NCBI GenBank assembly: GCA_965644265.1
Contig: OZ286466.1
Span: 70,500,589 to 70,558,000 of the forward strand
Direction of reading: 5' to 3'
DNA from: Glycera tridactyla
Taxonomy: Eukaryota
Length of the DNA stretch: 57,412 nt
The notes beneath the pieces were generated by a model. The model did not search any database, was not told the origin of the DNA, and saw only the letters and a list, made by a program, of their open reading frames with translations. This document shows, one piece after another, positions 25 to 56,541 of the stretch. The position numbers and the translations under genes were made by a program. Each line of letters begins with the position of its first letter. The stretch's first letter is position 1.

Positions 25-288
25 CAGTGGAGGAGGCGCTGGTTGGCGTAGTGCCGCAGAAGACTCGACGGTACTGGTCGACGTTGTTGGCGGGAACCTT
101 GAGGTTGGTCGTCTCGAGTGAAGCGGGGCTCAGATGAAGGTAACAGCGGAGCGAGGCGGTGAAGTCGAACGCCACACAGTTCATGTCTTGCCGACAGAGG
201 GCCTCGCATTCCGGTACCGTACTCACATACATCTCCGTACCACCGTATGCCAACGTGTTGGCGAGGAACTGGAAGGTATCCATGCATT
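25..288 (-). CDS. Exon: divergent PAN-like domain (ECMDTFQFLANTLAYGG...CEALC...CVAFDF...CYLH...VDQYRRVFC)
   Basis: Acceptor cttttgtag|AA at 288, donor ACT G|gtacgt at 25; 264 nt, phase 1-1; the donor shows the gene continues beyond base 1. Confidence 0.88.
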
Positions 289-3200: not shown

Positions 3201-6200
3201 ATCGGGAGCGACTTGATCTAAGGCGTCAGCTGAAAGTCCGTGTAACGCATTGATCCATAATCATTTATTCATTATCTTTATATTAGATAGGCTTATGGAT
3301 CATTCGTGTTAATAATTATTAAATGCCAATGCTTATTGATTATTATTGATGTCAACAGAGTGTCAGCAACAGGACTAATTCGAGATAGCGCCAATCTCCC
3401 ACTGCTATGGGTTCTTGTTATATTACCTCACTGACCGTGTCATATTTCGTGCCTTCACTCTGCTGATACATTCACATTATTTGGGACGGGAATTACTGAT
3501 AAATATTACTTCAAGTGAAGGATTTCGGGGGAAAACATGCAGTATTAATTCGAACAATTTCTTCAGACTGGTATTACGTATATCATCAACATCAATTTAC
3601 AATATTATGCACTGAATAATGGATCATAATTTCAGAGAATGACCATTGTTTGAGAAACTTCGATATAATTCAAAAGTTATCCAATATTTACTGATAATGA
3701 CAGTTGTCATCGATAAGAATGAACAAAACTGACAGTTGATGATACAAATATTCATATCCAGTACTGGAACACCTGTGATGGTATATAAATGATATGCGCA
3801 GTAATCGATCTTGAAAAATAATAGAGAAAACTATATGATGTTAGTTATTTACACTAGAAAGAATTTAGTAATTCGTTCACGCCCGAGAGAAGCAGCATTA
3901 TGTTTTTGACGACGTCGAAGCGACGTCAAGCAGCATTCTTCCATAAAAGTGAACACTCGGCAGCATTCTCCCATGAAAATAAACAGGCAGCATTCTTCCA
4001 TAAAAAACAGGCAGTATTCTTCCATAAAAGAAACAGGCAGCATTCTTCCATAAAAATAAACAACAGGCAGCATTCTTCCATAAAAATGAGATATAATCAG
4101 CATTTTTTCAAGGAAATGAACAATCAGAGTCATATCATCAGCGAAACCTAAGAACGAAATAAATGTAGGACGTATTGGTGTTAGAGGAAGAGAATCGTTA
4201 GACACAGAGAAGCAGTGGTCACGTTCGAGACAGATTATTGGTCTCGAATATGGAAAGTGGAACATTCCGCCGAATTTACGTTGTTCTGCATTTGTCCAAT
4301 CTCATGCAATTTTAACAGGTGTGATATAACCTACAATATTTGATACCCTCCTTAATATATGTCCTCTCTCTGTACCAATGAGCCTCTGCACCAGCAATGC
4401 CACAATGAGGACGACGAAGACGATGACGACGACGACGACCACAACCACCGGTACCTCCAGTCGCACCACAAAGCCACCAACTCCTCCTCTTCCTTCTGCA
4501 CCACCACCACCACAACCACCACCACCACCACCGCCACCACCACCATCACCATCACTATCTCTGCCATAACCACACCAGTAGCAGCAACATCACAACCACC
4601 ACCTCAACTTGGGGCATCACCATCACCACCACAGTTACCGCCACTGCCATAAACACCGCCACTACCACCACAACCAGCACAGCCACCACTACCAACATTA
4701 CCATTACTTTTCCTACCATAATTATGACACAACGACCACAACCACGACTGCTATCACCAACTCCATCGTCATCGTTGACCTCCGAAAATATATGAAAACA
4801 ATCTTCCCCATCACTACTAGTTATGTATGTTTCATGACACGACTCCTTCCAAGACCTTTTCTTTGGGGGCACATATGAGTGATTTGTTTGTTTGTTTGTT
4901 TGAGGCTTAACGGCATGTATCAACCCTAGGGTTATGTTTGCCGTGTGTTCTTGGTTATTGAGAGTTAGATGTTCTCTCCCCCGCAGACATCACTCTCACA
5001 AATCCCGAACACAAGATGATGGAAGCATAGACATAATGTTTCATATCTCAATCATGACATCATGACTGGGCTGGAAGACCACAATCCTGTCCAGGAAAGA
5101 TGCAGACTAGGAGGACAAGAAGAATCGAGCAGCATCGGGCCTGACAATCCAGCTCTAACGGTAATAATTAGACTAGAAAAACTTCATGCATATGTCAATA
5201 TATAAGGTAGGCGTGTATGATTAGAGAAAAAACGACGGAAATCGGAATACTCGAGCCTTTTACGTCAACTGCTTTCGCGACATGACGCAAATACCACAAA
5301 AACGACTTCATCTCTAGTTGGAAATGTGGGTTGAAAAAGCTCCTACGAGGATCGCACTGAGCCTAAGCTGTCACAGAAAAGATATGAGTGGATTGAACTG
5401 TATCGTTTTGGACGCCCGTGGCTTGAACATGATCATAGATGAAATAGATGAGAGAAACTCTAATTAGTGAATATTTTCACAACTCAAGTTTTCTAGCGAG
5501 AAACATCGAATCCAGCTAATGGCCAAGTATCATACCGATACAGTATCGTCCGAATTCGTCTGTCTGTCAATAGTTGGATGAATTCCACTAGAGAAATATT
5601 TCGGTCTGAAAAGATGCCAACATTGCCATGGAAACTACAGTTCCTTGGTTGTCTCACTTTCCTCACTAGATGTGACCCATCCATCACTAATGAGCAATTC
5701 TGAAGCCTCTCGAAGCCTCTAAATCTTAGGAGAATCATATGAGACACAGTTGACTTTATATCATCCTGATATGGCGAATTGTGGCTCGGACACCCCGATG
5801 GTGGTTATGTAATAGGGATTAATACCGAATTTGATCACCATGTGAGCGTTACTGCAAGTGCTCTTGTGAAGCAAAATGAAACAGTTTCACACATCAATCA
5901 AAGTGCAACCTTCAAGTATTAAGTGCAACTCATGTGGAGCAAAATATAATTTTACGGGTCAGTTCAAGTGCGACATTCAAGTATTAAGTGCGTCAAAATA
6001 TGATTTTACGGGTCAGTTCAAGTGCGACATTCACATATTAAGTGCTTCTGCATGCCATTCACAGCGTTGACGATCCATTAACTGCCTACGACTAGATATA
6101 TGTGTATGTCTATGCAGACTTCATGCAAATGTTACACGAAATACTGCCACCAGCGGTGCGCCATCTCGTGGAAGTTGATTGCAAACACAAGTTGCGGTAA

Positions 6201-9200
6201 AAGTGCGCCCCTCATGCAAGCGGCGTGGCCAGCGAGCCCGATATATGTATGTAAACATACGTTGCGTGCTTGGCGAACTTTGCGGACTTGGTGTACTCAT
6301 GACTGTTGTCGGTGAGGTCGCTAGACATTCTTCACTCCAGACATATTGATCAACATTAGGCTTGTTCAACTGGATTCTATCAGCCCAATCGGTGGCCTGG
6401 TGCAGGAAGCACCGATCATCGGCAGTGAAGTCGATGGCAAAACAAGGTGGATCCGCGCTCAGACATGCCATTTGGCAGTCTTCTAGACTCATCGCTGCAC
6501 TGGCGATATTTCCACCAAGTGCCAGTTGTTCTGGATACTCAGTCCAAATGATCACACACTCAGCTGGAAAACCAGCAAACAAGACATTAATTCTTTCGTT
6601 CGTTGTTCGTTTATTGCTGTAAACAATTGCCAAATTAGTCCGTCATTCATCGAGTCATAGATGAAGCGAGAGTCATATTTCTTGTAATTCTGTCCAGTTA
6701 AAACCTCGCAGCCACCTTTGTTTATGAATCGAAATTTTCCTAATGTTCAAAGCAAACCCATGTCTGTTGAAGCTATTCATTTTAGAATGCAAATCATTGG
6801 TGCCAAGTTGAAGTTGAGCCAACAGTAAACCGCAGTGCCCCTTTTGGCGAAGCGTGGCTTTGGTGGACATTTTACCTATGCATGTATATATGTATAGCGG
6901 TTTGCTTGCAGTGATTCAGGATGTTTCATCAGTGTATACATGTACATTCATGACATCATGAATCTAGCACCATTCCATGTTCGGTTCATTTCACCGCTCC
7001 AAGCTATTGTTCAAATATTAGTTGCAAAATGGAGGAGAACTACACTGGGGAAATCAGAAATTCTTAATTCGATTTTGGATATGCGAACTTTGGTCAGGTC
7101 ATTTCAGTCAACTTGACCTAAATATAACACATATCGTCATAACAGTGAGAGGAAACTTTTTGATAGGCAGCAGAGGTTGATGCTGGGGTGGGAGCAAGAA
7201 CAGAAGGTGCTGCAACGAAAATGTCACATCTTTGTGTAACAGAAACATTGCTATCAGGAGTCATGTAGCAGTCTATATAATCATGTCTAGGTCGGTAGTC
7301 ATTGATGTATATTATGCCAATAACAGGATAAAATTGTCAAGAAAGGAGAACTGATTGAACATAATATACAGCTAGACATAGATGAATATGTGAGATACAA
7401 TCAAAATGAGTAATGGATGGATGGTAGAGTGAGGTGAAAACGAATCAAGTCACACAAACCTTCTACTCCCTCAAAAAAGTAAGTATGAATATTCTACATC
7501 ATAATGACAAATGAATACAATGAACCTGCAACCATTGAAGATTTTAGAAGCACAAAATACATAACAACTTCAGTCAGATCGAATGTCAAACCATCTACCC
7601 CAGTGATTAAGTAAAGTATAAGTGGTTCGACATCATCAAGTTGTCGTAACATTACCAGGAGTGTCAGAAGATGTCAACTTAGCAGTTGTCTCTGTCGTGA
7701 CAGATGTCTGACTGGTCTGCGATGTCGGACTTGTCATTCCTGAAATATATGTTGGTTGCATAAATGTGTCGTCTCAGTAAGAGAGGCCTGTTTATTAGCA
7801 CAGTAGTTCAGTCAGGTGCTTGAGATGACCCTGACATCATAATTGGATGGGAACTTCCCCTATATCGATACACACTGCGAAAAGACAGTAAATATGTTGC
7901 TACATTCGCTTTCTCTCTCTCGAAATTCTGACGAAGTTCTCAGAAGTATNNNNNNNNNNNNNNNNNNNNNNNNNNNNNNNNNNNNNNNNNNNNNNNNNNN
8001 NNNNNNNNNNNNNNNNNNNNNNNNNNNNNNNNNNNNNNNNNNNNNNNNNNNNNNNNNNNNNNNNNNNNNNNNNNNNNNNNNNNNNNNNNNNNNNNNNNNN
8101 NNNNNNNNNNNNNNNNNNNNNNNNNNNNNNNNNNNNNNNNNNNNNNNNNNNNNNNNNNNNNNNNNNNNCTTTCATCCATTGCTAAATCAATTGTGCGCAC
8201 CTTTCTCTCACATGGACCGTCTCAGATATCACTAGTACTGTAACAATTCGGATGTAGTCACGACATTGCATATACCTGGGTATGTTGGAATCGTGATTCA
8301 TTTCATTCTCAATTTTAAAATGTTTTCCACTCTCAAAGTGGAATTCCGGAGAATATATCTCCTCCTAAAATGAAAAAGAACCTTTCTTCATATATAATCA
8401 CTATCTCAGTTTTATATTATGTGAAGATACTACAAACCATCACCCGACAAAAGCGTATCAGTATTAATGTGCATCGTATAATTGTTTACTTGTTTTGAAG
8501 GCTGGGTCCGATTACTGCATATGAATATGCATCTGAGCCATGACTTCTTTATATGTTGGACGTAATCCTGTACTTTGTATGTAATAAATCAATGACTTTT
8601 GGTCAGACATGGTTAGTGAGCGTTTGTCTCGTGAGCAAAAATGAATATCTCAGAAATATTCAAAAAATTCATCCTGCAGTGAGGCGAATGGAGGGATGCT
8701 TCTCTGGATCGAAGGGTCTGGTGAACTTGCTAATATTCTAGTATAATCGATCATATCAGCGTTTTATGGATAATCAGAGACCTGCCAACATCCGGACAAA
8801 TCTCCGACTTTAGTAATACTCGGGAGTTAATGACCTTGTATCTTCTTCTAATGTCAACGTATGACGAATGACTGAAGTGGGATATTAAACAACAACCAGA
8901 TATGCTGCTATCGGTTGCTGCTATCGGTTGCTGCAAATCAACCAGATATTTTCGTAATTATCGAATACTAATAATAATTATTATCATTATTATTATTATT
9001 GTTGGTCTGAAATTCTGTCTCATGACTGAATCTGGTGAAGTATTTCTTCTTCCATATGATAGATAAGAAACAAAAGTAGCCTATATCCTATGACCACGAT
9101 CGGAGGTTCATACTTCATGCATGTATTCTCCTATTATGAATCTTACGAAAATCATACCGAAGGTGTCAAAAATCCTACTAAAATATGCTTATATCGGCCA

Positions 9201-11136
9201 TAACTTTCCGAACGTGGCATTTGGGTCTATGATGATGGGTTGTTAGTGCGTATTTAGTTCAACTCCATTACGGTTGATTTATTGCTGAGACAGAGCTGAT
9301 GCTTGGTACTTTATCCGGATAATCTAGACGTACGATAATAGTAATCTTACTAGTAAGCAGTAATGGTAGTTGAAGTCAATGGTCCGTTATCGATTTATTA
9401 CTGTTAGGATTTAGAATTCACTTCTTTCAAAAATAAAGGCCAGTCTCTCCGAGGATGAATATCATGATTCACACTATAGTCATTGAGCATCTTCAGTGTG
9501 TATCTTAATCGATACTTGAGCATCATATACCCCACTCTTCTGACAACTCCATTACTATTATCGTAACATGGAGAGTTTTCAAACATTGATCTTCCTTCGA
9601 GCAGACGTTTGATATGCAGCTATCGGTTGCTGCAAATCAACCATTCTTTTTCTCTGAGAGTGAGCACATGAAGATTAGTCTTTGCTTATCCATCTACCAA
9701 AAATGTATAGTATTAGTTGAAGAAATAATCTATATCAAATGGGGTCCGACATATCAAATGAAGAATTCGAATACATATGCATATGGATATATCATATGCG
9801 AGTCCTTCTAAGTGTCCCTACCACCATATGTGCTATGGAGTTTATCCTCAGCAGATAAAATGTATAGTAACCCATTGGGAACTCATTCTTTAATCTACTC
9901 TGATGTGAAATGGGGTGTGTGAGTAGGGTGTAAAAATATCCAATACCTCTAGCATTTATTGTGAGTTTTTTCACCGTGGAATCACCAGTATATCACTGCA
10001 GGAAAATGTGATTTGTTATATAAATCTTCATTCTCCCACTTTAGCTCACAAATTATGCGCCTTCAAATTCATGCGAGGCTGCTGGTCGAAAACATGATTA
10101 AACTAAGACACTAATGTTTGGTTACTTCTGCAATTATCACAGAATTATCATGTGTTATTATAGGCAGATTAGTGTATGTGCAATATGATGAGTGTCAGCT
10201 TTACCCGATGTTGATTCTGGCTGAGAAAATGTTGGTCCTAGAATAAAAAAACACACATCTCCTTGTCAATAATTATTCGTAACAGAGGGTATTACAGATC
10301 CATTGATGCTTGACCAGCATACAGATACATACTTGATATGGTGTTGCTTTGGATAAGAAACACCTGCTAGTTTGTGCATTGTGATGTACACAGACGACGT
10401 GGATTTGTNNNNNNNNNNNNNNNNNNNNNNNNNNNNNNNNNNNNNNNNNNNNNNNNNNNNNNNNNNNNNNNNNNNNNNNNNNNNNNNNNNNNNNNNNNNN
10501 NNNNNNNNNNNNNNNNNNNNNNNNNNNNNNNNNNNNNNNNNNNNNNNNNNNNNNNNNNNNNNNNNNNNNNNNNNNNNNNNNNNNNNNNNNNNNNNNNNNN
10601 NNNNNNNNNNNNNNNNNNNNNNNNNNNNNNNNNNNNNNNNNNNNNNNNNNNNNNNNNNNNNNNNNNNNNNNNNNNNNNNNNNNNNNNNNNNNNNNNNNNN
10701 NNNNNNNNNNNNNNNNNNNNNNNNNNNNNNNNNNNNNNNNNNNCCAGATTAAGCAGAGACAACATGGATATTGAAAGATCCCAATTGGGCATCAGTATCA
10801 TTTGGGAATGGCACTGCTCACAGTGATTACACAAATCCAATCACACACACATGGACATCAATATGATTTGGAAATGACAATGCTCACAGTGATTACATAA
10901 ATCCAATCACACACAAACAAACACACACATACAAGGATATGATATTGGAAACGAAGCCCAGTCTTAGCAATCAGTAGAGTACTACAGAGAGAGGGTAAGT
11001 TGCACAGAACAATCAGCGAACATCAGCGAAAAGACAAGAGGTGAACGTTGAAAGCACTCACATCATCAGACACACTAAAGAAAAGAACCAAAGGCACCTG
11101 TTCGGTAGAAGAAAGAATGTGGACTCTCCCTTGCTG

Positions 11137-11175
<39 letters not shown>

Positions 11176-14100
11176 ATACAACATCCACATTTTCACGAAT
11201 CTCCTGGAAAACTGATATAACTTATAGTGCAAAGCACACACACACACACACACAATATACAACATCCACATTTTCACGAATCTCCTGGAAAACTGATATA
11301 ACTTATAGTGCAAAGCAATAAACACACACACACAATATACACACACACACAATATACAACATCCACATTTTCACGAATCTCCTGGAAAACTGATATAACT
11401 TATAGTGCAAAGCAATACACGGGAGGTCGATGGGATTAGCAGATAATTATATCAGGAGAGAAGACACACAGTATCATTATTGAATTAGTGGAAAATTCTA
11501 CCTTCATGACGAAATTGTTGTTTAGGAACTTACAACACTATCTAGTGTATTAGCACAAGCAGCAGCCAGGGTGATAGTCCCCACTGGAATAAATACAAAC
11601 ACTTGCAGCTGCTGCTAACGAGATGTCTGACCGGGTAAGATGGAGTCCGTGGAGGACTGATATCGCGATGGTGGCGATGTTGATACTGATGATGATGATG
11701 CTGATGATGATGATGTTGATGCCACTGTGGATTGTTGCGTTGGTACTGGAAATATGTCGTACAATATGAGTTCGATCTGCATAGCGTTGGCTTTGGTAGT
11801 ATCCTTAATTGGTATCTGATATCCTTAACTAGTTCGTCCATCTTCTTAGTTCTACCAGAGAATATATATGTCATTGAATATATTTTCATCTCATATTTTC
11901 TAACCAACGAACTGACATGAGAATATCTTATCTATCAACAGTGAATTTGCATTACGAATGGCAGGGCATTCTCAGTGGACACCACAGGATTTCCTAATTA
12001 TTACAATAACACTCCTTCAAGAAACAGGAAAACTGCTGATATGTGAAAAATGTTAATGATATGACCAGATCTACCCGGAAGGAGTAGTCTTGAATGATGC
12101 CACCCATGCACATTTCATAGGCGTACCAATATAGCACATTTGACGCCGATGTGATGTTAAACCAGAACCAATCTTCTGAACAACATACTTATCAGTAGCC
12201 TCTCTTTTTATTATGACGCCTTGATGGCAAGATATCACAATGGCATTTACTTATATACTTCTGTAGTATATATGCTTGATGGCAAGATATCACAATGACA
12301 TTTACTTATATACTTCTATAGTATATATGCTTGATGGCAAGATATCACGATGACATCTACCTATATACTTCTGTAGTATATATGCTGATGCTGAATATTC
12401 TTTGCTACTTCAATGCTACCATACCTGCAGTCAGCTTAGCCTAATGATGGGATATGTATGACATTCATCTATCCTTATGATACCAGCATCTCAATGCAGT
12501 GATTGGTATTTGCTCCTATATATTGTACATAAGTTACATGTTCTCGTGGGCCCCGAAAATATCTGGTTGTCAGATATCGGGCCATGTTTTGAGAGGAAAA
12601 TAAAGAATTAATGAAAAAAGTACAGGTGTTCTGTCCTAACTGGAGATATATAGATCAGCTGATAGGATCATGGGTGAAATTCGAAGAGAAAGGAATGATC
12701 CAATACTGACCAAATGGCTCTGTATCTCGAACACTGGTAGTGGATGTAAAGGATGCTGTAAAGGACATACCAACCAGTCAACAGAGTAAAACCAAACATT
12801 GCAAGAAGGAAATGGCAGATGATGAGACTAGGTGGGAAAATATCCATTCATAAATCAGAAAACCCTGTCTCTGTATAAAATAGCAAACGAACATGACAAA
12901 AAAGTCCTTATATGGTCGAGACTGGAATCAGGTTTCTGGAAGAAATACATTATTCGCTGAAAGAAAATGGTGCATATCCTGGAACAAGGATCTCTAAGAC
13001 ATGCACTTCAATGATGATGCAAAAGTAAACCCAAAAATGCCATACTAAAAAAACTGTGAGGTTTCACGTCTTGGAGAGATATTTTAGCAGGAGAAGAATT
13101 GCATTAAGACCAAGTTCAGGATATCAAGAAAGCATGGAACAGACTCAAGAATTGAAATATCGATATATTAATCAGAAGCAAATGAAGGAGACAGAATTGA
13201 GACAAGAAACTGCTGATGAAGAGAGCTGCTCATACTGCCCATATTAGAATGTTGCTATAGATAGGATTATGCCAGAGTTATTGAACGCAGGACAATTTGC
13301 AATTTGAAGAGCAAGATTATATGACTGTATAGCGAGTACTAACGAGGTGTACTGAGCACATGTATCTCTGTGTGAACAGGTCACAGGACACTTTCCTCTC
13401 CAAATCCTATGACATGGAGTTTTGAGGAAAATTGGGGAGTTTATGCCAATAGCATCAACCCCCTCACTCATAATCCTGATGAGTCAAGGGGTAAATAATA
13501 CCATTCCATCCTCTCATCTTCACCTGGGCATGAACGACAATTATAATCGAGCATCATGATTCCCAAAAGTGATTGGTGTTAATTTGTGTGTTAAATGGAA
13601 GATCTGAATAATCAAAATTGCCCAGTAAAATTGGATATATATACAAGAAATATAACATACCACGAGAACACCCCAGTAAAGATCATCCTTGAAGAGTAAT
13701 TCCCACAAGCATTGAGACGTTTGATAGGATGCCGATGCTCAGAAATAAGTAGTTCAGTCTAACCTGTCCTAAGCGGCAACTGTACTGAGCAACCACCTGC
13801 CCTGAGCATCAACTTTTGAAAGTCTCACCTGAGGTTTTCCACTATAGTTCACCAGCCCTAAGCAGCCACCTGCCGTAAGCAGCCACTTTATGCCTTGTCA
13901 AAGGGTGGCGGCTTAGAACAGGTTTGAATGTAACTACACATAATACTTTTGTGGTTGTTGTGGGTTAATGATAAAAAAATGAAGGCCACGCCCATGGGAT
14001 ATGCCATGGACATATGCTATCACTAACATTATATCATGCATCCATTTCCCACTGGTGTGACTGTATTAAGTATAAGATTCCCAAGTCATCTGTTATATTA

Positions 14101-16426
14101 GAATCACAGGTGCTTTAGACCCATTTAAAAGATCCATTTTCATCGGTGAGTGAGAGATCACTATCACCAGATATTCCCCAGATTGTTTTATTTGTTTGTT
14201 TGAGGTTTAACGGCATGTATCAACCCTAGGATTATGTATGCCATGCGTTCCTGGTGAATGAAAGCTAGATGTTCTCTCCTCTGCAGACATCTCTCTCACA
14301 AACCCTGAACACACTATTTCCCAGAGCGGAGAAGGCTAATACAAAATGATAGAATCCCGCCGGTAAGCCACCTCAAGATATGTATTGGCATACCAGTCTG
14401 GTCAGGGCAGTTCCTATCCAGCACCCACTGGTTGACGCTCGGCTTATTGGCTTGAATTCTGGTACTCCATGTTGGATCAACATGTAGGAAGCATCGGTAC
14501 ACCGTGTCAAAATCAAGTGCCATGCACATTTCATCCCTTATGCAGGATTTCTGGCAGGCCTCCAATGTTGTGGCATTCTTAATGTAAATTCCTCCATATG
14601 CCAGTTGCCTTGGAAACACTTGCCAGGTGTAGCTGCACTCCGATGCTGCAATACATGATGGAATATATCAGTTGCTGATGTTGTGAAAAATATATGCAAA
14701 ATAGATCTACATACAAGTGGTCTTGGCACTGGATGTAAATTGTTTTGATCATATTCATATTGGAGTGAGCTCAATTTTCGTAGAGGAATTTTGATGTTAC
14801 CATGTGGCGTGTTCAACATGGAAATTTCATTCATGATGGATGTGGTTATGTGATGACATGTTCCTTTGCAAATAATAATCAGATGGATATGAAATAACCC
14901 ATGTATGAGACATAATGATGATGAGTCCTGTCCTTACGTAATTTCCGAAATCAAACTTCAGTATCATGAAAAGAGCAAGCCAAAAGACCCTGATATGACC
15001 ATCTTGAGATATACATGTCCAATAAATTATGTCTACATGCCAGATCTATCAGTTGCGACACAGCTCACTATAGCCATCGCGGGGGTCATCAACCAGGTAT
15101 ATGATTCACGCCGGACTGTCATGAAAACAATGCTTGAAATAAAAAGAAAAGCCAAATCAGATGCCAATATCCAACCAATCACTATGGAGTAATTGCAAAC
15201 TTCAGTTGCTGTGAATTCCATAATTTTTCACCTCCAGTTGGGTACCCAGAAGAAGAGGTCTTGAATGATCCCTCCCATGCCCATTGCATGGGCGTCACAA
15301 TATAGCACATAGCGCTGATATGGCGTTGAATTAGAACCAAAATAGCAACACTTTTGTGGGAAGTACCACTCACAATCCAAGATATTCCAGTCATTCTATG
15401 ACATGGCGGTAGCACATACAAACCATATTAGGAGCCTTTGCGAACATACTTGTCATGGATATGCTTGTGGTGGGTATGCTTGTGGGTATGCTTGTCATCA
15501 GGAGAGGCAGTGTGGTTGTGTCTGTGACCTCCGGACAGATTTCTGTCATCACCCACTGGTTAACGTGTGGTTTATTGAGAGCTATGCTGCTTCTCCAAGC
15601 CGGATTGGTGTGCAGATAACAGCGAGTTGCAGAGTCAAAGTCTATGGCGAAACAGATTCCATGCATCACACAGGCACTTTTGCAAAGATCCACTGTGCCA
15701 GCGGTTGCCATGTAGATACCACCATATGCCAGCTGCTCGGGGTACAAATCCCACTCGATTCTACAGCCTGGTGCTGTAATATAATCCATCACTATTAGTG
15801 CATGCATGTATGTATTTCTAGATGAGTGATAAAATAATAAGCNNNNNNNNNNNNNNNNNNNNNNNNNNNNNNNNNNNNNNNNNNNNNNNNNNNNNNNNNN
15901 NNNNNNNNNNNNNNNNNNNNNNNNNNNNNNNNNNNNNNNNNNNNNNNNNNNNNNNNNNNNNNNNNNNNNNNNNNNNNNNNNNNNNNNNNNNNNNNNNNNN
16001 NNNNNNNNNNNNGCATATATGTTTGAATGAGTGTGTGTGCATGTATGCATGTATGTATATTCGTTTGTATGTGTGTATATGCATGTGTCTTTTGTATGCT
16101 TGTAAACATGTATATGGCACAAACGTAATATTATCACTCATCAGCCATGAACTTATAAACAAGAGTTAAAAAGCATATTGTCTTGATATGACACCGCAGA
16201 AACTGTAGGTACAGTCGCTGACTACTTGAGTCACATCTCAGCGAAAATCAAAAAGCCCAATCTTCCAAATCAGCCGAAAAACAACATGTCTGGTTTGGTT
16301 GGTGTCAGTCAATAAAAAAGCTGACTCTCAACTCATTATAGTCTTCAGGGGAAATGATGCACTAGTGTGGGCCAGAGTTCAAGCAATTATAATGATATAC
16401 ACGTAATCATCCATGTAATGTGAAGA

Positions 16427-16493
<67 letters not shown>

Positions 16494-16835
16494 CATGAGT
16501 GATCGACGAAGTGCTTGCATATCATCAGGAAACAGTTTTGAAGTGACATAAGTCAATCAATTCCTACTTCAGCGAAAATTACAGTGCATTGGCACTGGGA
16601 GATTGTGCCAGTGTACCGAAATAGGATATTTCACACTCATTGATCAATGCATATTTGAAAATTCTCATCAAGTAAATTAAAATAGAGAAAACTATTATTG
16701 ACAGTAATCAAGAGAGGGATTGGGCCATAGCCGAACCAGTTTATTTCCACATCGGAAACACCTATTCAATATATCCATCATCCATTGGGGAAAGTAGGGT
16801 AGTTCAGATTGGGGAATAAGCGTGCTCTCTCTCTT

Positions 16836-16885
<50 letters not shown>

Positions 16886-19629
16886 TCTCGCTCTCTCTTG
16901 TATAACCAGGGGTTTGGCTTACATTTCTGCGGAGATCAAACCCATTAGATATGTTTTGATATGGGGCTATTTGAGAAAAAAAAATCCAAATACTCTATGG
17001 AGGTTTCAGTACTTGGGAAAATGATTGGTATGGAATGATTAGTATGTGATATACCAACATAAGAATTGATATAAGGCAGTCACAAGTGACAAGCGAAACA
17101 CGAAAGAAAAAACAGAATGCTCTCATTATTTTCAACATATCAAATTCTTTGAAAGTTGCTTTAATCATTATAATAAATATAAAAAAAGCATATAACAAAA
17201 GTACATATAAAACAACTAATCCATAATTTTTCCCCGAAATGTTAGAAACATAGGACGGAATAAGGGTGATCCAAATATGATTCCTCAGGGAATATTCATG
17301 AAAGATACAGCCAAGACCTTCTATCGTCATAAATTTGTTAGGACAGTCATATGAAATCTTTATTTTCATATGGAGCACTGGGTCACTGTGCTGGATAAAT
17401 GGTAATAAGTGTGCGAAAAGGTTGATTGATTGGCCAATGAATCGACTGATTGATTGGGTAATTGATCGATTGATCGATCAATTAATTAGTTGATCAACTA
17501 TCTTACGTTTCTAGATCAGTGGGCAATTAGAAGAAAACATTTATCACTGGCTGGCCTGCCAAATAACTTGAAATTTGATGGATAAACCCCCCCCCCCCAC
17601 AAAACTTCCCCAATAAACCTATGATAGGGGGTTGATAAAAACTCCTAAAATATACCTATGATAGAAGGTAAGGTCGATACAATTTCACAAATCTCGTTGC
17701 CCAAGTGGAAGTCTTCAATATGCAACAGATAGTATCTGGATTCCCAAGTTATAGGCACTCTCGGTAGAGCATTTGTTGAACCCACCAAAAAGCTGGGGAT
17801 AACCCATTAGTGTTCGTGTGACTCAAAGAAAACCAGAGAATGATATTGGGGAGAGATCTCCACTTGTTGGTAGGCCATTTCAGTAGTGATTTGTCTCAAC
17901 CCACCAAAGAGCTGGGGATGACCCATAAGTGAGTAGTATGACCCAACGAAAACCAGCGATAGATGCTGCAGTGATCTACTCATTGGTAGGCGGTTTCAGT
18001 TGCGAAATGTTTCAACCCATCAAACAACTGGGGACAACCCATGAGTGTGTGGTGTGAGCCGAAGGAACCCAACGAATGCGATGGGAGAGAGACCTACTTG
18101 TTGGTAGGCAATGTCAGTAGCGAATTGTTTCAACCCATAAGTGAGTGGTGTGACCGAAAGGAACCAGCATATTGGGAAGCGACCTACTCGTTGGGTAGGC
18201 AGCTCAAGTAGCAATTCCTTTCATCCCACCAGACAGCCGGGAATGACCAATAAATGAGTGGTGCGACCCGAAGAAAACCTGCGAATGCTATTGGAGAGAG
18301 ACCTACTTGTTGGTAGGCTGGTGAGTGTGCTGCTCTCAGGACATGACCTGCTCAATACCCATTGATCAACACTGATTTTGCCCATCTGGATGTTTGAACT
18401 CCAGCCTGGGTCTGTGTGAATGAAGCATTTGTTGGCCTTGTCATAATCAATTGCTGTACAAGTGAGGTTTTGGACGCAAGCCTCCTGGCAACCCTGCAGG
18501 CTGGTGATGGCGGGCATCCAGGCGCCTCCATAAGCTAGCTGATCTGGATACACTGTCCAGGAGACCTCACAGTCAGAGGCTGCAAAATATGGAGAAAGAG
18601 CAAACATTATATGGATGACATTATAGTATGTTGGCCTGCTCACATTTTACTAATAATTTTTTCCCTATCCCTTTCTCGTGTATCATATTATTCTAAGCAC
18701 CCGCAAATGATCTACTGATACCCATATAATTGAATAAAGAGCAAACATTGTATGGCTCAGATGATAGTATGTTATCATATTCTGGCCTGACCACATGTTA
18801 CCCACTAAAAATTCTTCTTCCTCTCCCATTCTTGTATATCATATTTATCCATGCATCTGCAAATGATCTACTGATACCCATATAATTGAATAAAGAGTAA
18901 ATATTGTATGGTTGAGATGATAGCATGTCAGACATTTTTTTGCCTGATTACATGTTACCCAATAAGAGTCTTTTCTGTATCATAATTCATCTGATCACCT
19001 GAGTATGATCAACAGATGCCTATATGATTGAGGACGGTTGAAGTTCCTGCTGATTGATACAAATGTCAGGATATTTAGCATGATTCCATTTCAGGCGGAT
19101 ATGAGTATATTTGCTGTATTTTTTCTCAGAAAGATACTAATCTCATAAATTGTGAAATGGATCTCACGATCTTTGTACATTTACACGCAGATGTTAGGAT
19201 ATAGTATACTATTTGGATCACACTTGAAGCTTGGTGAATATGCCATAAATACTTACTGATCTGGCACTGAAAACATGACAATTTGAACATACCTTTTCAT
19301 ATCAAAATCACTAGGTTGAGGATATTCCTTGCTTTCAGATGAATTATTGTGTATATTGAGTGATATTCTTCATACATACCCTTTCAGGAGGCTCCAATAC
19401 AGTATTGACAAACATATAAAGATACTTCCATATGCTACCCTGCTCATTTGTTAGTACAATGATCCATGGCGACAAGTCAGTTAGCCAGTCCCATCAGTGG
19501 CAAAAAGATGAAAGCTCCGAGTAACAATCCAAAATAAGAGTTCCATTCACATACCTACAGGAACCTCTCTCTCTTTCTCTTCCTCTGTCTTTCTCTCATC
19601 CTCTCTCTTACTTTCTCTTCCTCTCTCTA

Positions 19630-19714
<85 letters not shown>

Positions 19715-19822
19715 CCTTCTTTTATTCACCCTCTCTCGGACTTGACACGCAAATGGGCATGATGAAAAAACATCTGGTATTCATGTAGTGCATATTCGGA
19801 GAATGTGTTACCAAATGAGTAT

Positions 19823-19898
<76 letters not shown>

Positions 19899-46800: not shown

Positions 46801-49800
46801 GAATCATGTGACAATGCAATAAATAAACTCTTTAACACTATTGTATCAAGCTATATTATTTCCAGGAAACGTTATGCCATCCACCAGCTATTTTGTTTCA
46901 TATTGTCTGTTGTGTGCATCATGGCCAGCAGAAATGATGTGATTGTATCATCAGTCAGAGATTATTCTCCCAAATTGAAATCCTGCATTGCTGAGTGATT
47001 TGAGTGTACATAATTGAAGAAGACTGCATTTGAGGGTTTGTTTCAGCCAGAAAAGGGGCTGCACTGAGCAGGATAATTACCTATTGTGGTTCCACAGGCT
47101 CGGTTCGGCACCCATTGATCAACATCAGGATGGTTAGTTTGAATTCTGTCTGACCAGTTAGGATCAACATGCATGTAACATTTTCCATTGAAATCAATGG
47201 CAAGACACGATCGATTGTTCAGGCAAGCATTTTTACATTCTTCGACTGTAGGGGCACTAGGAACAACGATTCCACCGAAGGCAAGTTGATTAGGGAAAGA
47301 TTCCCATGTGATACTACAATCAGGAGTTGCTGAAAATGAAGGGACATGTTTGAATTCCTCATGGTTTTCGAAGGTGAACTTGGTTCAGTATTGATGCAGT
47401 TGTCACGAGATATGTTCTTCAGGTATTGTTCATTGTATTCTATTCATTTCTGACTCATCACAATGGGATGCGTTTTTGGTGATTGCCCATTTTTCGAGGT
47501 GTCATCACATCGCTATGATTGGTTTACCAGCCATACCTCGAATGGTTGACATTCATGCATGTTTACCAGGGGATTGTCATGGCATTGAGAGCTGTGAATC
47601 TGTGGAGGGTTGTTTGTGATTCATTTTGGTTTGGCGGGGAACTGCTTTGCATACCAGATATCCGGTGGTCTATTTTTGTTCGCATTTATTGAAAGTCAGA
47701 GCTTCTTCTGCGGATTGAGTGATTTGAAAGGGTTCTTCATAATGCGCATGCGGTATTCTTGTCTGTATCATGATTTACAATCACAGAACTCTAGCAACAT
47801 GATCATTGAAATTACCCCATGTGACAGTTTATACTGGTGTAGTGCACGATGTTGGACTTGAAAAGGTAAGAATTACCTATTGTGGTGCCACAGGCTCTGT
47901 TCAGTACCCATTGGTCTACATTTGGATGGTTGGTCTGGATGTTGTCAGACCAGTTAGGATCCAGATGCAAGTAACACTTGCCATTAAAGTCAATGGCTAG
48001 ACATGACTGGTCATCGAGACAGGCCTTTTTACACTCCTCAGCGTTGGATGCTGATGGAACAACGATTCCACCAAAGGCTAGCTGGTTTGGGAAAGATTCC
48101 CATGAGATGCTACAGTCTGAAAACGAATGAGTTTGAAATACAAGATTTATCCATAAAAAGATGGTTTGGATTTTGGAAGATGAGGACATGACCTGAATAC
48201 ATGGTACTAACTTCAGAATGATGGATAATTAGAAAATATATTCCGTGGAAATCTGGACAGGAGGAATACAAAACCCATCGTATTCCATTAGTTCTTTACT
48301 TCCACCCAAGTTTTAGTTTTTGGAGTATGTGACACATATTGTGATAAAAATGTGAATTACCATCTGCACAGTTTTTGTCCAGCACCCATTGGTCAACCTC
48401 AGGATGATTCGTTTGGATTCTGTCTGGCCAGTTAGGATCCACATGCATGTAACACTTGCCATTGAAGTCAATAGCTAGGCATGACTGATTATTCAGACAT
48501 TCATTCTGACATTCCTGAACATTGGATGCTGATGGGACAACAATCCCACCAAATGCTAGCTGTGATGGGAAGAAATTCCATGTAATGCTGCAGCCACCAG
48601 CTGAAATAAATAAGCATGGGTTCATCAATTGCGGAGATATATGCATATGTGGGTTTGCGACTTTACCCGGAGATTCTTATGTCGTAATATCTTGCATGAG
48701 TATAGTTGACACAGTTATAAATCAGGACCGAATGCCTCAGATCGAACCGATTTCATATGCGAAATCGTCTACATTTCTGAAATCATGTGACAATGCAATA
48801 AATAAATTATTTACCACTATTGTATCATGCTATATCATTTCCAGGAAACGTTATGCCATCCACCAGTTATTTTGTTTCATATTGTCTGTTGTGTGCATCA
48901 TGGCCAGCAGAAATGATGTGATTGTATCATCAGTCAGAGATTATTCTCCCAAATTGAAATCCTGCATTGCTGAGTGATTTGAGTGTACATAATTGAAGAA
49001 GACTGCATTTGAGGGTTTGTTTTAGCCAGAAAAGGGTTCGCACTGAGCAGGATATTTACCTATTGTGGTTCCACAGGCTCGGTTCGGCACCCATTGATCA
49101 ACATTAGGATGGTTAGTTTGAATTCTGTCTGACCAGTTAGGATCAACATGCATGTAACATTTTCCATTGAAATCAATGGCAAGACATGATCGATTGTTCA
49201 GGCAAGCATTTTTACATTCTTCGACTGTGGGGGCACTCGGAACAACGATTCCACCGAAGGCTAGTTGATTAGGGAAAGATTCCCATGTGATACTACAATC
49301 AGGAGTTGCTGAAAATGAAGAGACATGTTTGAATTCCTCATGGTTTTCGAAGATGAACTTGGTTCAGTATTGATGCAGTTGTCACGAGATATATTTCCTA
49401 GGTATTGTTCATTGTATTTTATTCATTTCCGACTATTTCTGACTCATCACAATGGGATGCAATTTTGGTGAGTGCCCATTTTTTTTGAGGTGTCATCACA
49501 TCGCTATGATTTGATGACCAGCCATACCTCGAATGGTTGACATTCATGCATGTTTACCAGGGGACTGTCATGGCATTGAGAGCTGTGAATCTGTGGAGGC
49601 TTGTTTGTGATTCATTTTGGTTTGGCGGGGAACTGCTTTGCATTCCAGATATCCGGTGGTCTATTTTTGTTTGCATTTATTGAAAGTCGGAGCTTCTTCA
49701 GCAGATTGAGTGATTTGAAAGGGTTCTTCATAATGCGCATGCGGTATTCTTGTCTGTATCATGATTTACAATCACAGATCTCTAGCAACATGCTCATTGA

Positions 49801-52800
49801 AATCACCCCATGTGACAGTTTATACTGGTGTAGTGCACGATGTTGGACATGAAAAGGTAAGAATTACCTATTGTGGTGCCACAGGCTCTGTTCAGTACCC
49901 ATTGGTCTACATTTGGATGGTTGGTCTGGATGTTGTCAGACCAGTTAGGATCCAGATGCAAGTAACACTTGCCATTAAAGTCAATGGCTAGACAAGACTG
50001 GTCATCGAGACAGGCCTTTTTACACTCCTCAGCGTTGGATGCTGATGGAACAACGATTCCACCAAAGGCTAGCTGGTTTGGGAAAGATTCCCATGAGATG
50101 CTACAGTCTGAAAACGAATGAGTTTGAAATACAAGATGTATCAATAAAAAGATGGTTTGGATTTTGGAAGATGAGGACATGACCTGAATACATGGTACAC
50201 ACTTCAAAATGATGGATAATTAGAAAATATATTCCGTGGAAATCTGGACAGGAGGATTACAAAACCCATCGTATTCTATTAGTTCTTTACTTCCACCCAA
50301 GTTTTAGTTTTTGGAGTATGTGACACATATTGTGATAAAAATGTGAATTACCATCTGCACAGTTTTTTTCCAGCACCCATTGGTCAACCTCAGGATGATT
50401 CGTTTGGATTCTGTCTGGCCAGTTAGGATCCACATGCATGTAACACTTGCCATTGAAGTCAATAGCTAGGCATGACTGATTATTCAGACATTCATTCTGA
50501 CATTCCTGTACATTGGATGCTGATGGGACAACAATCCCACCAAATGCTAGCTGTGATGGGAAGAAATTCCATGTAATGCTGCAGCCACCAGCTGAAATAA
50601 ATAAGCATGGGTTCATCAATTGCGGAGATATATACATGTGTGGGTTTGCGACTTTACCCGGATATTCTTATGTCGTAATATCTTGCGTGAGTATATTTGA
50701 CACAGGTATCAATCAGGGCCGAATGCCTTAGATTGAACCGATTTCATATGCGAAATGGTCTATATTTCTGGAATCATGTGACAATGCAATAAATAAACTC
50801 TTTAACACTATTGTATCATGCTATATTATTTCCAGGAAACGTTATGCCATCCACCAGCTATTTTGTTTCATATTGTCTGTTGTGTGCATCATGGCCTGCA
50901 GAAATGATGTGATTGTATCATCAGTCAGAGATTATTCTCCCAAATTGAAATCCTGCATTGCTGAGTGATTTGAGTATACATAATCGAAGAAGACTGCATT
51001 TGAGGGTTTGTTTCAGCCAGAAAAGGGTTTGCACTGAGCAGGATAATTACCTATTGTGGTTCCACAGGCTCGGTTCGGCACCCATTGATCAACATTAGGA
51101 TGGTTAGTTTGAATTCTGTCTGACCAGTTAGGATCAACATGCATGTAACATTTTCCATTGAAATCAATGGCAAGACACGATCGATTGTTCAGGCAAGCAT
51201 TTTTACATTCTTCGACTGTAGGGGCACTAGGAACAACGATTCCACCGAAGGCAAGTTGATTAGGGAAAGATTCCCATGTAATACTACAATCAGGAGTTGC
51301 TGAAAATGAAGAGACATGTTTGAATTCCTCATGGTTTTCGAATTTGAACTTGGTTCAGTATTGATGCAGTTGTCACGAGATATGTTTCCTAGGTATTGTT
51401 CATTGTATTCGATTCATTCCTGACTCATCACAATGGGATGCATTTTTGGGGAGTGCCCATTTTTCGAGGTGTCATCACATCGCTATGATTGGATTTCCAG
51501 CCACACCTCGAATGGTTGACATTCATGCATGTTTACCAGGGGATTGTCATGGCATTGAGAGCTGTGAATCTGCGGAGGCTTGTTTGTGATTCATTTTGGT
51601 TTGGCGGGGAACTGCTTTGCATGCCATATATCCGGTGGTTTCATATTTGTTTGTATTTATTGAGTCAGAGCTGCTTCAGCAGATCAAGTGATATGAAAGG
51701 GTTCATAATAATGCGCATGTGGTATTCTTGTCTGTATCATGATTTACAATCACAGACCTCTAGCAACATGCTCATTGAATTTACCCCATGTGACAGTTTG
51801 TACTGGTGTAGTGCACGACGTTGGACATGAAAAGGTAAGAATTACCTATTGTGGTGCCACAGGCTCTGTTCAGTACCCATTGGTCTACATTTGGATGGTT
51901 GGTCTGGATGTTGTCAGACCAGTTAGGATCCAGATGCAAGTAACACTTGCCATTAAAGTCAATGGCTAGACAAGACTGGTCATCGAGACAGGCCTTTTTA
52001 CACTCCTCAGCGTTGGATGCTGATGGAACAACGATTCCACCAAAGGCTAGCTGGTTTGGGAAAGATTCCCATGAGATGCTACAGTCTGAAAACGAATGAG
52101 TTTGAAATACAAGATGTATCCATAAAAAGATGGTTTGGATTTTGGAAGATGAGGACATGACCTGAATACATGGTACTAACTTCAGAATGATGGATAATTA
52201 GAAAATATATTCCGTGGAAATCTGGACAGGAGGAATACAAAACCCATCGTATTCTATTAGTTCTTTACTTCCACCCAAGTTTTAGTTTTTGGAGTATGTG
52301 ACACATTTTGTGATAAAAATGTGAATTACCATCTGCACAGTTTTTTTCCAGCACCCATTGGTCAACCTCAGGATGATTCGTTTGGATTCTGTCTGGCCAG
52401 TTAGGATCCACATGCATGTAACACTTGCCATTGAAGTCGATAGCTAGGCATGACTGATTATTCAGACATTCATTCTGACATTCCTGAACATTGGATGCTG
52501 ATGGGACAACAATCCCACCAAATGCTAGCTGTGATGGGAAGAAATTCCATGTAATGCTGCAGCCACCAGCTGAAATGAATAAGCATGGGTTCATCAATTG
52601 CGGAGATATATACATGTGTGGGTTTGCGACTTTACCCGGAGATTCTTATGTCGCAATATCTTGCATGAGTATAGTTGACACAGTTATGAATCAGGGCCGA
52701 ATGCCTCAGATCGAACCGATTTCATATGCGAAATCGTCTACATTTCTGAAATCATGTGACAATGCAATAAATAAATTATTTACCACTATTGTATCATGCT

Positions 52801-55800
52801 ATATCATTTCCAGCAAACGTTATGCCATCCACCAGCTATTCTGTTTCATATTGTCTGTTGTGTGCATCATGAACAGCAGAAATGATGTGATTGTATCATC
52901 AGTCAGAGATTATTCTCCCAAATTGAAATCCTGCATTGCTGAGTGATTTGAGTGTACATAATTGAAGAAGACTGCATTTGAGGGTTTGTTTCAGCCAGAA
53001 AAGGGTTCGCACTGAGCAGGATATTTACCTATTGTGGTTCCACAGGCTCGGTTCGGCACCCATTGATCAACATTAGGATGGTTAGTTTGAATTCTGTCTG
53101 ACCAGTTAGGATCAACATGCATGTAACATTTTCCATTAAAATCAATGGCAAGACATGATCGATTGTTCAGGCAAGCATTTTTACATTCTTCGACTGTGGG
53201 GGCACTCGGAACAACGATTCCACCGAAGGCTAGTTGATTAGGGAAAGATTCCCATGTGATACTACAATCAGGAGTTGCTGAAAATGAAGAGACATGTTTG
53301 AATTCCTCATGGTTTTCCAAGGTGAACTTGGTTCAGTATTGATGCAGTTGTCACGAGATATATTTCCTAGGTATTGTTCATTGTATTTTTATTCATTTCC
53401 GACTATTTCTGACTCATCACAATGGGATGCAATTTTGGTGAGTGCCCATTTTTTTCGAGGTGCCATCACATCGCTATGATTGGATGACCAGCCATACCTC
53501 GAATGGTTGACATTCATGCATGTTTACCAGGGGATTGTCATGGAATTGAGAGCTGTGAATCTGTGGAGGCTTGTTTGTGATTCATTTTGGTTTGGCGGGG
53601 AACTGCTTTGCATTCCAGATATCCGGTGGTCTATTTTTGTTTGCATTTATTGAAAGTCGGAGCTTCTTCAGCAGATTGAGTGATTTGAAAGGGTTCTTCA
53701 TAATGCGCATGCGGTATTCTTGTCTGTATCATGATTTACAATCACAGATCTCTAGCAACATGCTCATTGAAATCACCCCATGTGACAGTTTATACTGGTG
53801 TAGTGCACGATGTTGGACATGAAAAGGTAAGAATTACCTATTGTGGTGCCACAGGCTCTGTTCAGTACCCATTGGTCTACATTTGGATGGTTGGTCTGGA
53901 TGTTGTCAGACCAGTTAGGATCCAGATGCAAGTAACACTTGCCATTAAAGTCAATGGCTAGACAAGACTGGTCATCGAGACAGGCCTTTTTACACTCCTC
54001 AGCGTTGGATGCTGATGGAACAACGATTCCACCAAAGGCTAGCTGGTTTGGGAAAGATTCCCATGAGATGCTACAGTCTGAAAACGAATGAGTTTGAAAT
54101 ACAAGATGTATCCATAAAAAGATGGTTTGGATTTTGGAAGATGAGGACATGACCTGAATACATGGTACTAACTTCAGAATGATGGATAATTAGAAAATAT
54201 ATTCCGTGGAAATCTGGACAGGAGGATTACAAAACCCATCGTATTCTATTAGTTTTTTTACTTCCACCCAAGTTTTAGTTTTTGAGAGTATGTGACACAT
54301 ATTGTGATAAAAAGGTGAATTACCATCTGCACAGTTTTTTTCCAGCACCCATTGGTCAACCTCAGGATGATTCGTTTGGATTCTGTCTGGCCAGTTAGGA
54401 TCCACATGCATGTAACACTTGCCATTGAAGTCAATAGCTAGGCATGACTGATTATTCAGACATTCATTCTGACATTCCTGTACATTGGATGCTGATGGGA
54501 CAACAATCCCACCAAATGCTAGCTGTGATGGGAAGAAATTCCATGTAATGCTGCAGCCACCAGCTGAAATGAATAAGCATGGGTTCATCAATTGCGGAGA
54601 TATATACATGTGTGGGTTTGCGACTTTACCCGGATATTCTTATGTCGTGATATCTTGCGTGAGTATATTTGACACAGGTATCAATCAGGGCCGAATGCCT
54701 TAGATTGAACCGATTTCATATGCGAAATGGTCTATATTTCTGAAATCATGTGACAATGCAATAAATAAACTCTTTAACACTATTGTATCATGCTATATTA
54801 TTTCCAGCAAACGTTATGCCATCCACCAGCTATTTTGTTTCATATTGTCTGTTGTGTGCATCATGGCCAGCAGAAATGATGTGATTGTATCATCAGTCAG
54901 AGATTATCCTCCCAAATTGAAATCCTGCATTGTTGAGTGATTTGAGTATACATAATCGAAGAAGACTGCATTTGAGGGTTTGTTTCAGCCAGAAAAGGGG
55001 CTGCACTGAGCAGGATAATTACCTATTGTTGTTCCACAGGCTCGGTTCGGCACCCATTGATCAACATTAGGATGGTTAGTTTGAATTCTGTCTGACCAGT
55101 TAGGATCAACATGCATGTAACATTTTCCATTGAAATCAATGGCAAGACACGATCGATTGTTCAGGCAAGCATTTTTACATTCTTCGACTGTAGGGGCACT
55201 AGGAACAACGATTCCACCGAAGGCTAGTTGATTAGGGAAAGATTCCCATGTGATACTACAATCAGGAGTTGCTGAAAATGAAGAGACATGTTTGAATTCC
55301 TCATGGTTTTCGAATTTGAACTTGGTTCAGTATTGATGCAGTTGTCACGAGATATGTTTCCTAGGTATTGTTCATTGTATTCTATTCATTCCTGACTCAT
55401 CACAATGGGATGCATTTTTGGTGAGTGCCCATTTTTCGAGGGGTCATCACATCGCTATGATTGGATTTCCAGCCACACCTCGAATGGTTGACATTCATGC
55501 ATGTTTACCAGGGGATTGTCATGGCATTGAGAGCTGTGAATCTGTGGAGGCTTGTTTGTGATTCATTTTGGTTTGGCGGGGAACTGCTTTGCATGCCATA
55601 TATCCGGTGGTTTCATATTTGTTTGTATTTATTGAGTCAGAGCTGCTTCAGCAGATCAAGTGATATGAAAAGTTTCATAATGATGCGCATGTGGTATTCT
55701 TGTCTGTATCATGATTTACAATCACAGACCTCTAGCAACATGCTCATTGAATTTACCCCATGTGACAGTTTGTACTGGTGTAGTGCACGACGTTGGACAT

Positions 55801-56541: not shown

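Follow-up and report, generated by a model that had tools for sequence, protein, structure and literature searches.

The minus strand of a 57-kb window of the Glycera tridactyla genome (57,412 nucleotides, the whole stretch of DNA that was analysed) carries 49 six-Cys PAN/Apple modules together with one Ser/Thr/Pro-rich (PTS) exon. We consider it likely that this window is the inner segment of one very large, expressed gene for a secreted, multivalent PAN glycoprotein. PAN modules are extracellular, disulfide-locked binding units, which normally occur in one to about a dozen copies, while PTS segments act as O-glycosylated spacers. Giant modular extracellular proteins as such are common in invertebrate genomes. 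In the present case, 39 of the modules form a tandem array, which is spliced in frame according to contigs from two public runs that are presumed to be RNA, and whose modules are under purifying selection. Given the type of domain, we assume that the protein is secreted; its glycosylation and a role as mucus, adhesive or lectin appear plausible in the same way.

Gene layout and PAN modules

A search for the six-Cys pattern returned 48 complete modules on the minus strand and, by chance, a single match on the plus strand. With a profile of 12 representative modules, the same 48 were recovered (91-140 bits), as was one half-module at 2266-2117. The latter turned out to be part of a 49th module, which is split over two minus-strand exons: the first half at 2121-2268 contains Cys 1-4 and has a phase-1 acceptor and a phase-2 donor, the second half at 1447-1556 contains Cys 5-6 and a short S-rich tail and has a phase-2 acceptor and a phase-1 donor. 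Joined (2268-2121 plus 1556-1447), both halves give 258 nt with six Cys, scoring 26.7 bits against the module profile (E 2e-10). The 49 six-Cys modules of the original prediction were thus counted exactly, 48 of them occupying one exon each and one being split. A 29-nt minisatellite (1748-2123; 12.8 copies, 71% matches) occupies much of the phase-2 intron within the 49th module and starts 1-2 bases before the first-half exon ends. It may be a trace of how a single exon became split, or it may have expanded in a pre-existing intron.

In each of the 48 single-exon modules, the first Cys lies at most a few codons from a phase-1 AG acceptor, and the last Cys is soon followed by a phase-1 GT donor, so that 48 of the 49 modules are single phase 1-1 exons and one is split by a phase-2 intron; the exon structure bears out a design of one exon per module, with about 77 residues in each. 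Donors mostly read GTAAxT, and nearly all acceptors are preceded by a pyrimidine tract of 13-16 in 20 bases, with only 9-10 at exon 15773-15450. The Cys spacing in the array modules is C-x26-C-x3-C-x5-C-x8-C-x27-C and varies slightly in the diverged modules. Beyond this Cys framework, an alignment of 12 modules has 16 invariant and 8 near-invariant positions.

The assignment of the modules to the PAN/Apple domains, which had been made from the letters alone, was borne out at the level of profiles and of fold. Single modules reached 22.5-28.1 bits against Pfam PAN_1 (PF00024; cut-off 21.4), with a Pfam match at E<=0.01 in 11 of the 12 representative modules, and PAN_2, PAN_3 and PAN_4 matched more weakly than PAN_1. 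A one-module sequence search of solved structures gave marginal kallikrein matches only (E 0.75) and a spurious SUVH4 match, which made a fold search necessary. The AlphaFold model of the A module of the array (12-row alignment; mean pLDDT 94.6) consists of strands and one central helix, in line with the PAN fold, in which a curved beta-sheet packs on a central helix. Nearly all of its top 30 structural matches (Foldseek) were PAN/Apple domains, free or as modules within larger proteins. The best match in VIA-align was leech anti-platelet protein (LAPP; Z 10.8, rmsd 2.0 Å, 75 of 79 residues); further matches were plasminogen, the HGF N-domain and the apples of Factor XI (FXI) and prekallikrein (Z 8-9) as well as TgMIC4 and SML-2 (Z 7.6-7.8), whereby the best fold match indicates a common fold and not a function. 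PAN clusters were also among the matches of a language-model atlas search. Based on alignment to PAN structures, disulfides C1-C6, C2-C5 and C3-C4 would be expected in each module. A Pfam scan of the larger non-PAN open frames in the window gave no match.

Downstream of the array, the minus strand carries four unique PAN exons. The first one (29879-30115) is A-like, with 86% nucleotide identity to the A exon; its acceptor may be 30115, 30109 or 30154, all in phase 1, and the bin 29901-30100 has a depth of 17.6 in run X1, one of the two public runs. It is followed by the unique exons 28988-29227, 27218-27487, which ends in a 12-residue T/P-rich tail, and 25342-25578, which was defined by module profile and splice sites. 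The more diverged PAN exons begin with 18307-18579, which is 54.5% identical to the public ORF P0024 and has its S/T-rich tail in common with it. Exon 15450-15773 has a 28-residue S/T/P tail and an ambiguous and weak acceptor (15767, 15773 or 15791), while exon 14394-14645 was again defined by module profile and splice sites. Exon 6261-6563 ends in an S/T/P tail, its donor being 6297, 6288, 6279 or 6261, all in phase 1. Downstream of the split module, the last PAN exon in the window (25-288) has an S/T tail and a donor at 25, which leads out of the window.

The mucin-like PTS exon is located at 23374-24222 on the same strand. It measures 849 nt and encodes 283 residues, of which 56% are S/T/P and none is Cys. 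Its open frame (23330-24250) contains one strong acceptor (24222) and one canonical donor (23374, G|GTAAGT), and with these best splice sites the 283-aa PTS segment of the original prediction is exact. The exon includes 2.6 copies of a 153-nt (51-aa) repeat, and a Pfam scan of it returned no family match. Relaxed splice filters yielded two candidate S/T-rich linker exons in phase 1-1 on the minus strand, 11632-11745 and 7656-7772 (the acceptor of the latter may be 7739), and strict filters for separate S/T linker exons or microexons left a single 33-nt candidate at 10237-10205. S/T linkers are mostly the 3' tails of PAN exons. The S/T linkers and mucin segments that had been predicted for the protein are found in the 3' part, as PTS exon and tails, and are almost lacking in the array, where linkers between modules are 2-8 residues long.

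Together, the spliced PTS exon and the 48 PAN exons amount to 12,726 nt, and their 4,241 codons include no stop. The predicted product, of ~467 kDa before glycosylation, has 288 Cys, 56 N-X-S/T sequons and a pI of 4.6. The split module adds 86 aa to the joined model, and together with the two candidate linker exons this comes near the one uninterrupted frame of ~4,400 aa called originally. Since the gene model opens on an acceptor (56541) and closes on a donor (25), it runs past both window ends, and neither start nor stop lies within the window. The same two positions had been the limits of the original model, which was right in letting the gene run off both ends.

Four assembly gaps may conceal exons or misjoins. 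All of these N runs are intronic in the model, with 70, 405, 1,387 and 3,651 nt to the nearest exon edge, and the reading frame is independent of gap length because every exon or exon pair is phase 1-1. One gap (24627-24779) interrupts the intron that separates PAN exon 25578-25342 from the PTS exon, with 405 nt to the closest exon edge; a second one (15843-16012), likewise intronic, precedes exon 15773-15450 by 70 nt. The remaining two are located between exons 14645-14394 and 6563-6261, one in a long intron region (10409-10743) and one 178 nt upstream of a candidate linker exon (7950-8168). Introns also contain (CA)n-type microsatellites and 66-97-nt tandem repeats (10786-11417, 16390-16556 and 19725-20018); the block 10786-11417 is <=50 bases from one gap and the block 16390-16556 ~400 bases from another, which fits assembly breaks at simple repeats. 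Further intronic tandem repeats have units of 116 nt (3.1 copies, 17779-18137) and 80 nt (2 copies, 3930-4086). The region 4305-4989 is of low complexity, with long open frames in several minus-strand frames (poly-Gly, poly-Val and poly-Trp-like); no Pfam family matched it, and it is probably intron DNA of simple sequence, not an exon. When the whole window was scanned with Rfam, there was no match either.

We also considered a gene on the plus strand and rejected it: the long plus-strand ORFs inside the array are mirror images of PAN exons, and the six-Cys pattern matched this strand just once, by chance. These ORFs of 72-151 aa appear once per array unit (48522-48977, 52491-52946 and similar) and are the antisense of A exons plus adjoining intron, not independent genes.

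Splicing and evolution of the 13-unit array

Pattern search and splice sites delimit a tandem genomic array at 31188-56541 on the minus strand, which consists of 13 units of 1978-1994 bp with three PAN exons each, i.e. 39 modules. The exons A, B and C measure 240, 240 and 249 nt, respectively, and the introns about 244, 546-560 and 459 nt. A spliced unit comprises 729 nt; the whole array has 9,477 nt after splicing and stays open through all 3,159 codons. On the minus strand, A exons start at the acceptors 56541, 54563, 52569, 50591, 48600, 46621, 44631, 42639, 40648, 38669, 36678, 34698 and 32707. B exons start at 56057, 54077, 52085, 50107, 48116, 46139, 44147, 42155, 40166, 38185, 36195, 34215 and 32225. 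C exons start at 55271, 53277, 51299, 49308, 47329, 45339, 43347, 41356, 39377, 37386, 35406, 33415 and 31436. Open frame, six Cys and both splice sites are retained in all 39 exons. The array is PAN-only, almost free of S/T linkers, and its predicted bead chain is acidic (pI ~4.5).

Expression was assessed in two public runs of one study (X1 and X2), the run type of which was guessed to be RNA. Both contain about one tenth of the 31-mers of positions 25000-32900, which is close to the exon share. When placed on 26901-32900, a 759-nt contig of X1 and a 744-nt contig of X2 show the joints 31436>31986 and 32225>32468. These joints carry CT..AC ends on the plus strand, corresponding to GT..AG on the gene strand, exactly at the predicted ends of the A, B and C exons. 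The contigs then return from 32707 to 31188 (1520 back), from the A exon into the C exon, and as their length equals the 729-nt unit plus a k-mer overlap, the assembler closed the repeated spliced unit into a circle. In the last unit, the minus-strand A-type exon (32468-32707) is covered by the joint 32225>32468 and by a piece with 0-2 differences, as found for X1 exon pieces in general; both splice sites of the B-type exon (31986-32225) are seen in the contigs of X1 and X2, and the C-type exon (31188-31436) is entered from the A exon. Intron bins were without any X1 contig. Such intron-free joints at GT..AG sites are typical of RNA, and they show that the array is spliced in frame in the order A, B, C and next A. 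As repeats collapse in contigs, the latter cannot count units per transcript.

Downstream of the array, contigs of X1 and X2 cover exon 27487-27218 at ~98% identity and end at the predicted splice sites. RNA depth on exon 29227-28988 was ~0, with no RNA contig on it, and a joint from the array (31188) to exon 30115-29879 is absent from the listed contigs. In the upstream direction, the contig of exon 27487-27218 goes on for ~30 nt that would encode a T-rich linker; this extension was not found in the window, either with <=3 mismatches or by short-word BLAST. The contig may stem from a paralogous transcript or from a splice to an exon beyond the window.

The array units are 94-99.6% identical to each other (0.4-5.8% difference), with an edge unit that differs by ~15-17%. 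Across the 13 units, exons are 99.0% identical versus ~91% for introns. The 729-nt spliced unit has 25 variable sites, 21 of them at third codon positions, and the units encode six distinct proteins. Twenty of these 25 sites are synonymous, while roughly one synonymous change in four would be expected by chance, which shows that selection on the protein maintains the array copies. When the A, B and C types are compared with each other and with the unique modules of the flank, synonymous sites are saturated (dS 0.5 to >2) at a dN/dS of 0.05-0.27, and homology of array unit and flank is confined to the exons, with no intron homology left. The 13-fold amplification is recent, the module types themselves being old.

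The array is a higher-order repeat made of exons. Its units fall into two length classes of about 1978-1980 and 1990-1994 bp, and the nearest pairs are units two apart: U1 and U3 (98.4%), U2 and U4 (98.7%), U8 and U10 (99.6%) as well as U9 and U11 (98.6%). This pattern implies that the array grew in part by doubling of two-unit blocks (~3.97 kb, six exons).

Proposed function and rival explanations

Why should an animal string so many copies of one small binding fold together? Most likely they would hold on to a ligand that is itself repetitive, e.g. a glycan, collagen, another polymer of the matrix or the surface of a microbe. In this protein, the 5' part within the window is a recently amplified and homogenised array of 39 beads, which form an acidic and probably stiff chain. 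The 3' part consists of ten older, diverged modules, several of them with short Ser/Thr/Pro tails that would carry O-glycans, and of the 283-residue mucin-like exon. Multivalency of this kind would be fitting for a material such as mucus, cuticle, tube, adhesive or matrix. Strong constraint on 39 acidic modules that are almost identical suggests avidity for such a ligand, in a material that would be secreted. In the window itself, we found neither a signal peptide nor a membrane anchor or a polymerising domain.

Whether the window holds one gene depends on how the array is connected to the exons downstream. The unique 3' exons and the PTS exon lie on the same strand as the array, agree with it in phase and follow no internal start exon, from which we infer one transcript across the whole window. 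The original prediction had placed all modules on one chain. It stands for the array, by virtue of the RNA joints A-B-C-A; beyond the array, it agrees with these three features. The main rival reading, that the window instead contains two or more neighbouring PAN genes, e.g. a PAN-only array gene (31-57 kb and beyond) and a separate PAN-mucin gene (0-30 kb), seems unlikely to us. Such an arrangement would agree with RNA joints being found inside the array only and with introns that lengthen from ~0.5 kb in the array to 1-8 kb past it. Moreover, exons that are symmetric in phase 1 always join in frame, which makes an uninterrupted frame a poor argument for a single transcript. On its upstream side, the contig of exon 27487-27218 runs on into sequence absent from the window, but with ~98% identity it may derive from a paralogue. 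Against two genes, we found on the minus strand of the window neither a signal-peptide-like first exon, the search for which returned only simple-repeat artefacts, nor any other start, and no in-frame terminal stop at a plausible last exon after the array. The final array exon keeps an intact phase-1 donor identical to the internal ones, and the next exon, A-like and in phase 1, follows 1,072 nt on.

One could also suspect that the array is inflated or misassembled, or that most of its units are skipped or are pseudo-exons, leaving a real protein with far fewer modules. Near-identical 2-kb repeats are indeed difficult to assemble, assembly gaps are nearby and the RNA contigs, collapsed to one 729-nt circle, give no copy count. 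We nevertheless regard this as very improbable: the differences between units are structured in extent (0.4-5.8%), length class and pairing, unlike a duplicated consensus, frame, Cys and splice sites are kept throughout the 39 exons, and synonymous sites prevail by 20:5, which speaks for translation of the copies. Another possible, though rather doubtful, reading accepts the single gene and takes its PAN beads mainly as inert spacers, stabilised by disulfides, which do not bind ligands but give structure to a fibre or to a coat such as an egg envelope, a tube or a cuticle. Very short linkers and near-identical modules would suit a rod or fibre, the 294 Cys could also cross-link between molecules, and PAN domains are present in nematode cuticle and apical-matrix proteins (PMC4970718). 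However, many non-Cys positions, charged and aromatic ones included, are conserved across old paralogues, which goes beyond the needs of six Cys, and characterised PAN modules are binding modules (PMC7191736, PMC4970718).

We thus prefer the reading of one gene for a secreted, ligand-binding PAN glycoprotein. In a bolder version, which we put forward tentatively and hold to be a less probable possibility, a single gene of well over 100 PAN modules (>10,000 residues) would encode the largest PAN-domain protein known, forming a PAN-bead network in a mucin-like material. If this were true, the network would be built by multivalent PAN beads rather than by VWD or cystine-knot polymerisation, and symmetric exons in a homogenised exon array would permit rapid variation of copy number and isoform length. 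At least 49 PAN modules, 39 of them nearly identical and with constraint at the protein level, would represent extreme avidity by repetition. The array is also a clean case of an exon-made higher-order repeat that stays in frame through symmetric splicing, and the A-B-C unit of 243 residues offers a simple recombinant unit. Our results point towards a little-studied class of invertebrate extracellular materials, the multi-PAN proteins of annelids, molluscs and others.

Public relatives and described systems

Searching 1.84 billion representatives with the module profile yielded 1,470 matches at E<=0.001. The best relatives reached E-values of 1e-123 to 1e-47, with a module identity of just 30-43%. 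The top relative was Helobdella robusta T1FVV8 (2,524 aa), in which 21 PAN stretches are followed by VWA and C1q, and the second an intron-less JGI contig protein of 1,969 aa with 17 PAN stretches and C1q. Octopus sinensis LOC118764742 combines 21 PAN with Sushi, an ENA protein of 5,928 aa contains at least 53 PAN_1 stretches, and other relatives include a Dimorphilus protein and dinoflagellate proteins. As extracellular-type multi-PAN proteins with VWA, C1q or Sushi, these relatives were counted in favour of a secreted glycoprotein. The architecture search for proteins with >20 PAN domains had been suggested together with the original prediction: public chains with 20-53 PAN do exist, so that such proteins are not unheard of, but all of them are unnamed. 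Full-text literature searches found neither a named orthologue nor a paper describing giant or tandem multi-PAN proteins. Short ORFs on public contigs of 0.5-1.8 kb (P0024-P0033; NCBI GCA_013332675.1, 1-kb contig) are 53-58% identical to single modules and, judged by sequence, are probably single exons of orthologous giant PAN genes in related species.

Among described proteins, the closest in fold is LAPP (PDB 1i8n), a secreted invertebrate protein with 24% identity to the Glycera module, whose single PAN domain binds collagen (PMC7191736). LAPP is from leech, as are the nearest multi-PAN sequence relatives (Helobdella), yet it is a small one-domain salivary protein, whereas the Glycera gene has 49 modules and a mucin-like exon. 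PAN/Apple modules occur together with a PTS segment in C. elegans LET-653, an apical luminal matrix glycoprotein composed of a signal peptide, two PAN domains, a PTS region and a ZP domain, in which the PAN domains tether the protein to the fibrillar luminal matrix (PMC4970718). LET-653 differs by having two PAN domains instead of at least 49 and shows no sequence orthology to the Glycera gene; a ZP domain of its type was without match in the window, and the 3' gene end lies outside.

Tandem PAN modules serving as lectins or adhesins are found in TgMIC4, with six apple domains, and in Sarcocystis SML-2, which provides a structural likeness. These apicomplexan adhesins, however, serve invasion by protists, have few modules, lack a mucin exon and are not close to Glycera in sequence. 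The apples of Factor XI and prekallikrein and the N-domains of plasminogen and HGF have the fold and the Cys framework in common with the Glycera modules, but occur as 1-4 modules joined to kringle or serine-protease domains, which the window lacks; with 49 modules and no protease match in the window, membership in the Factor XI/prekallikrein family, in which four apple domains precede a trypsin-like protease domain, was rejected. Gel-forming mucins are characterised by long PTS domains, a feature that the 283-codon exon shows, although it is small beside true mucin PTS domains. The larger non-PAN open frames in the window yielded neither the polymerising VWD-C8-TIL assemblies nor a C-terminal cystine knot, both gene ends being located outside.

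Long chains of back-to-back PAN modules make the T1FVV8-type multi-PAN proteins similar to the Glycera gene. These relatives have VWA, C1q or Sushi, none of which was found in the window, with the 3' gene end outside of it, and an array of 13 x 3 near-identical units is not known from any of them. With multi-PAN relatives already public, the Glycera gene represents neither a new fold nor a new principle, but an extreme variant.
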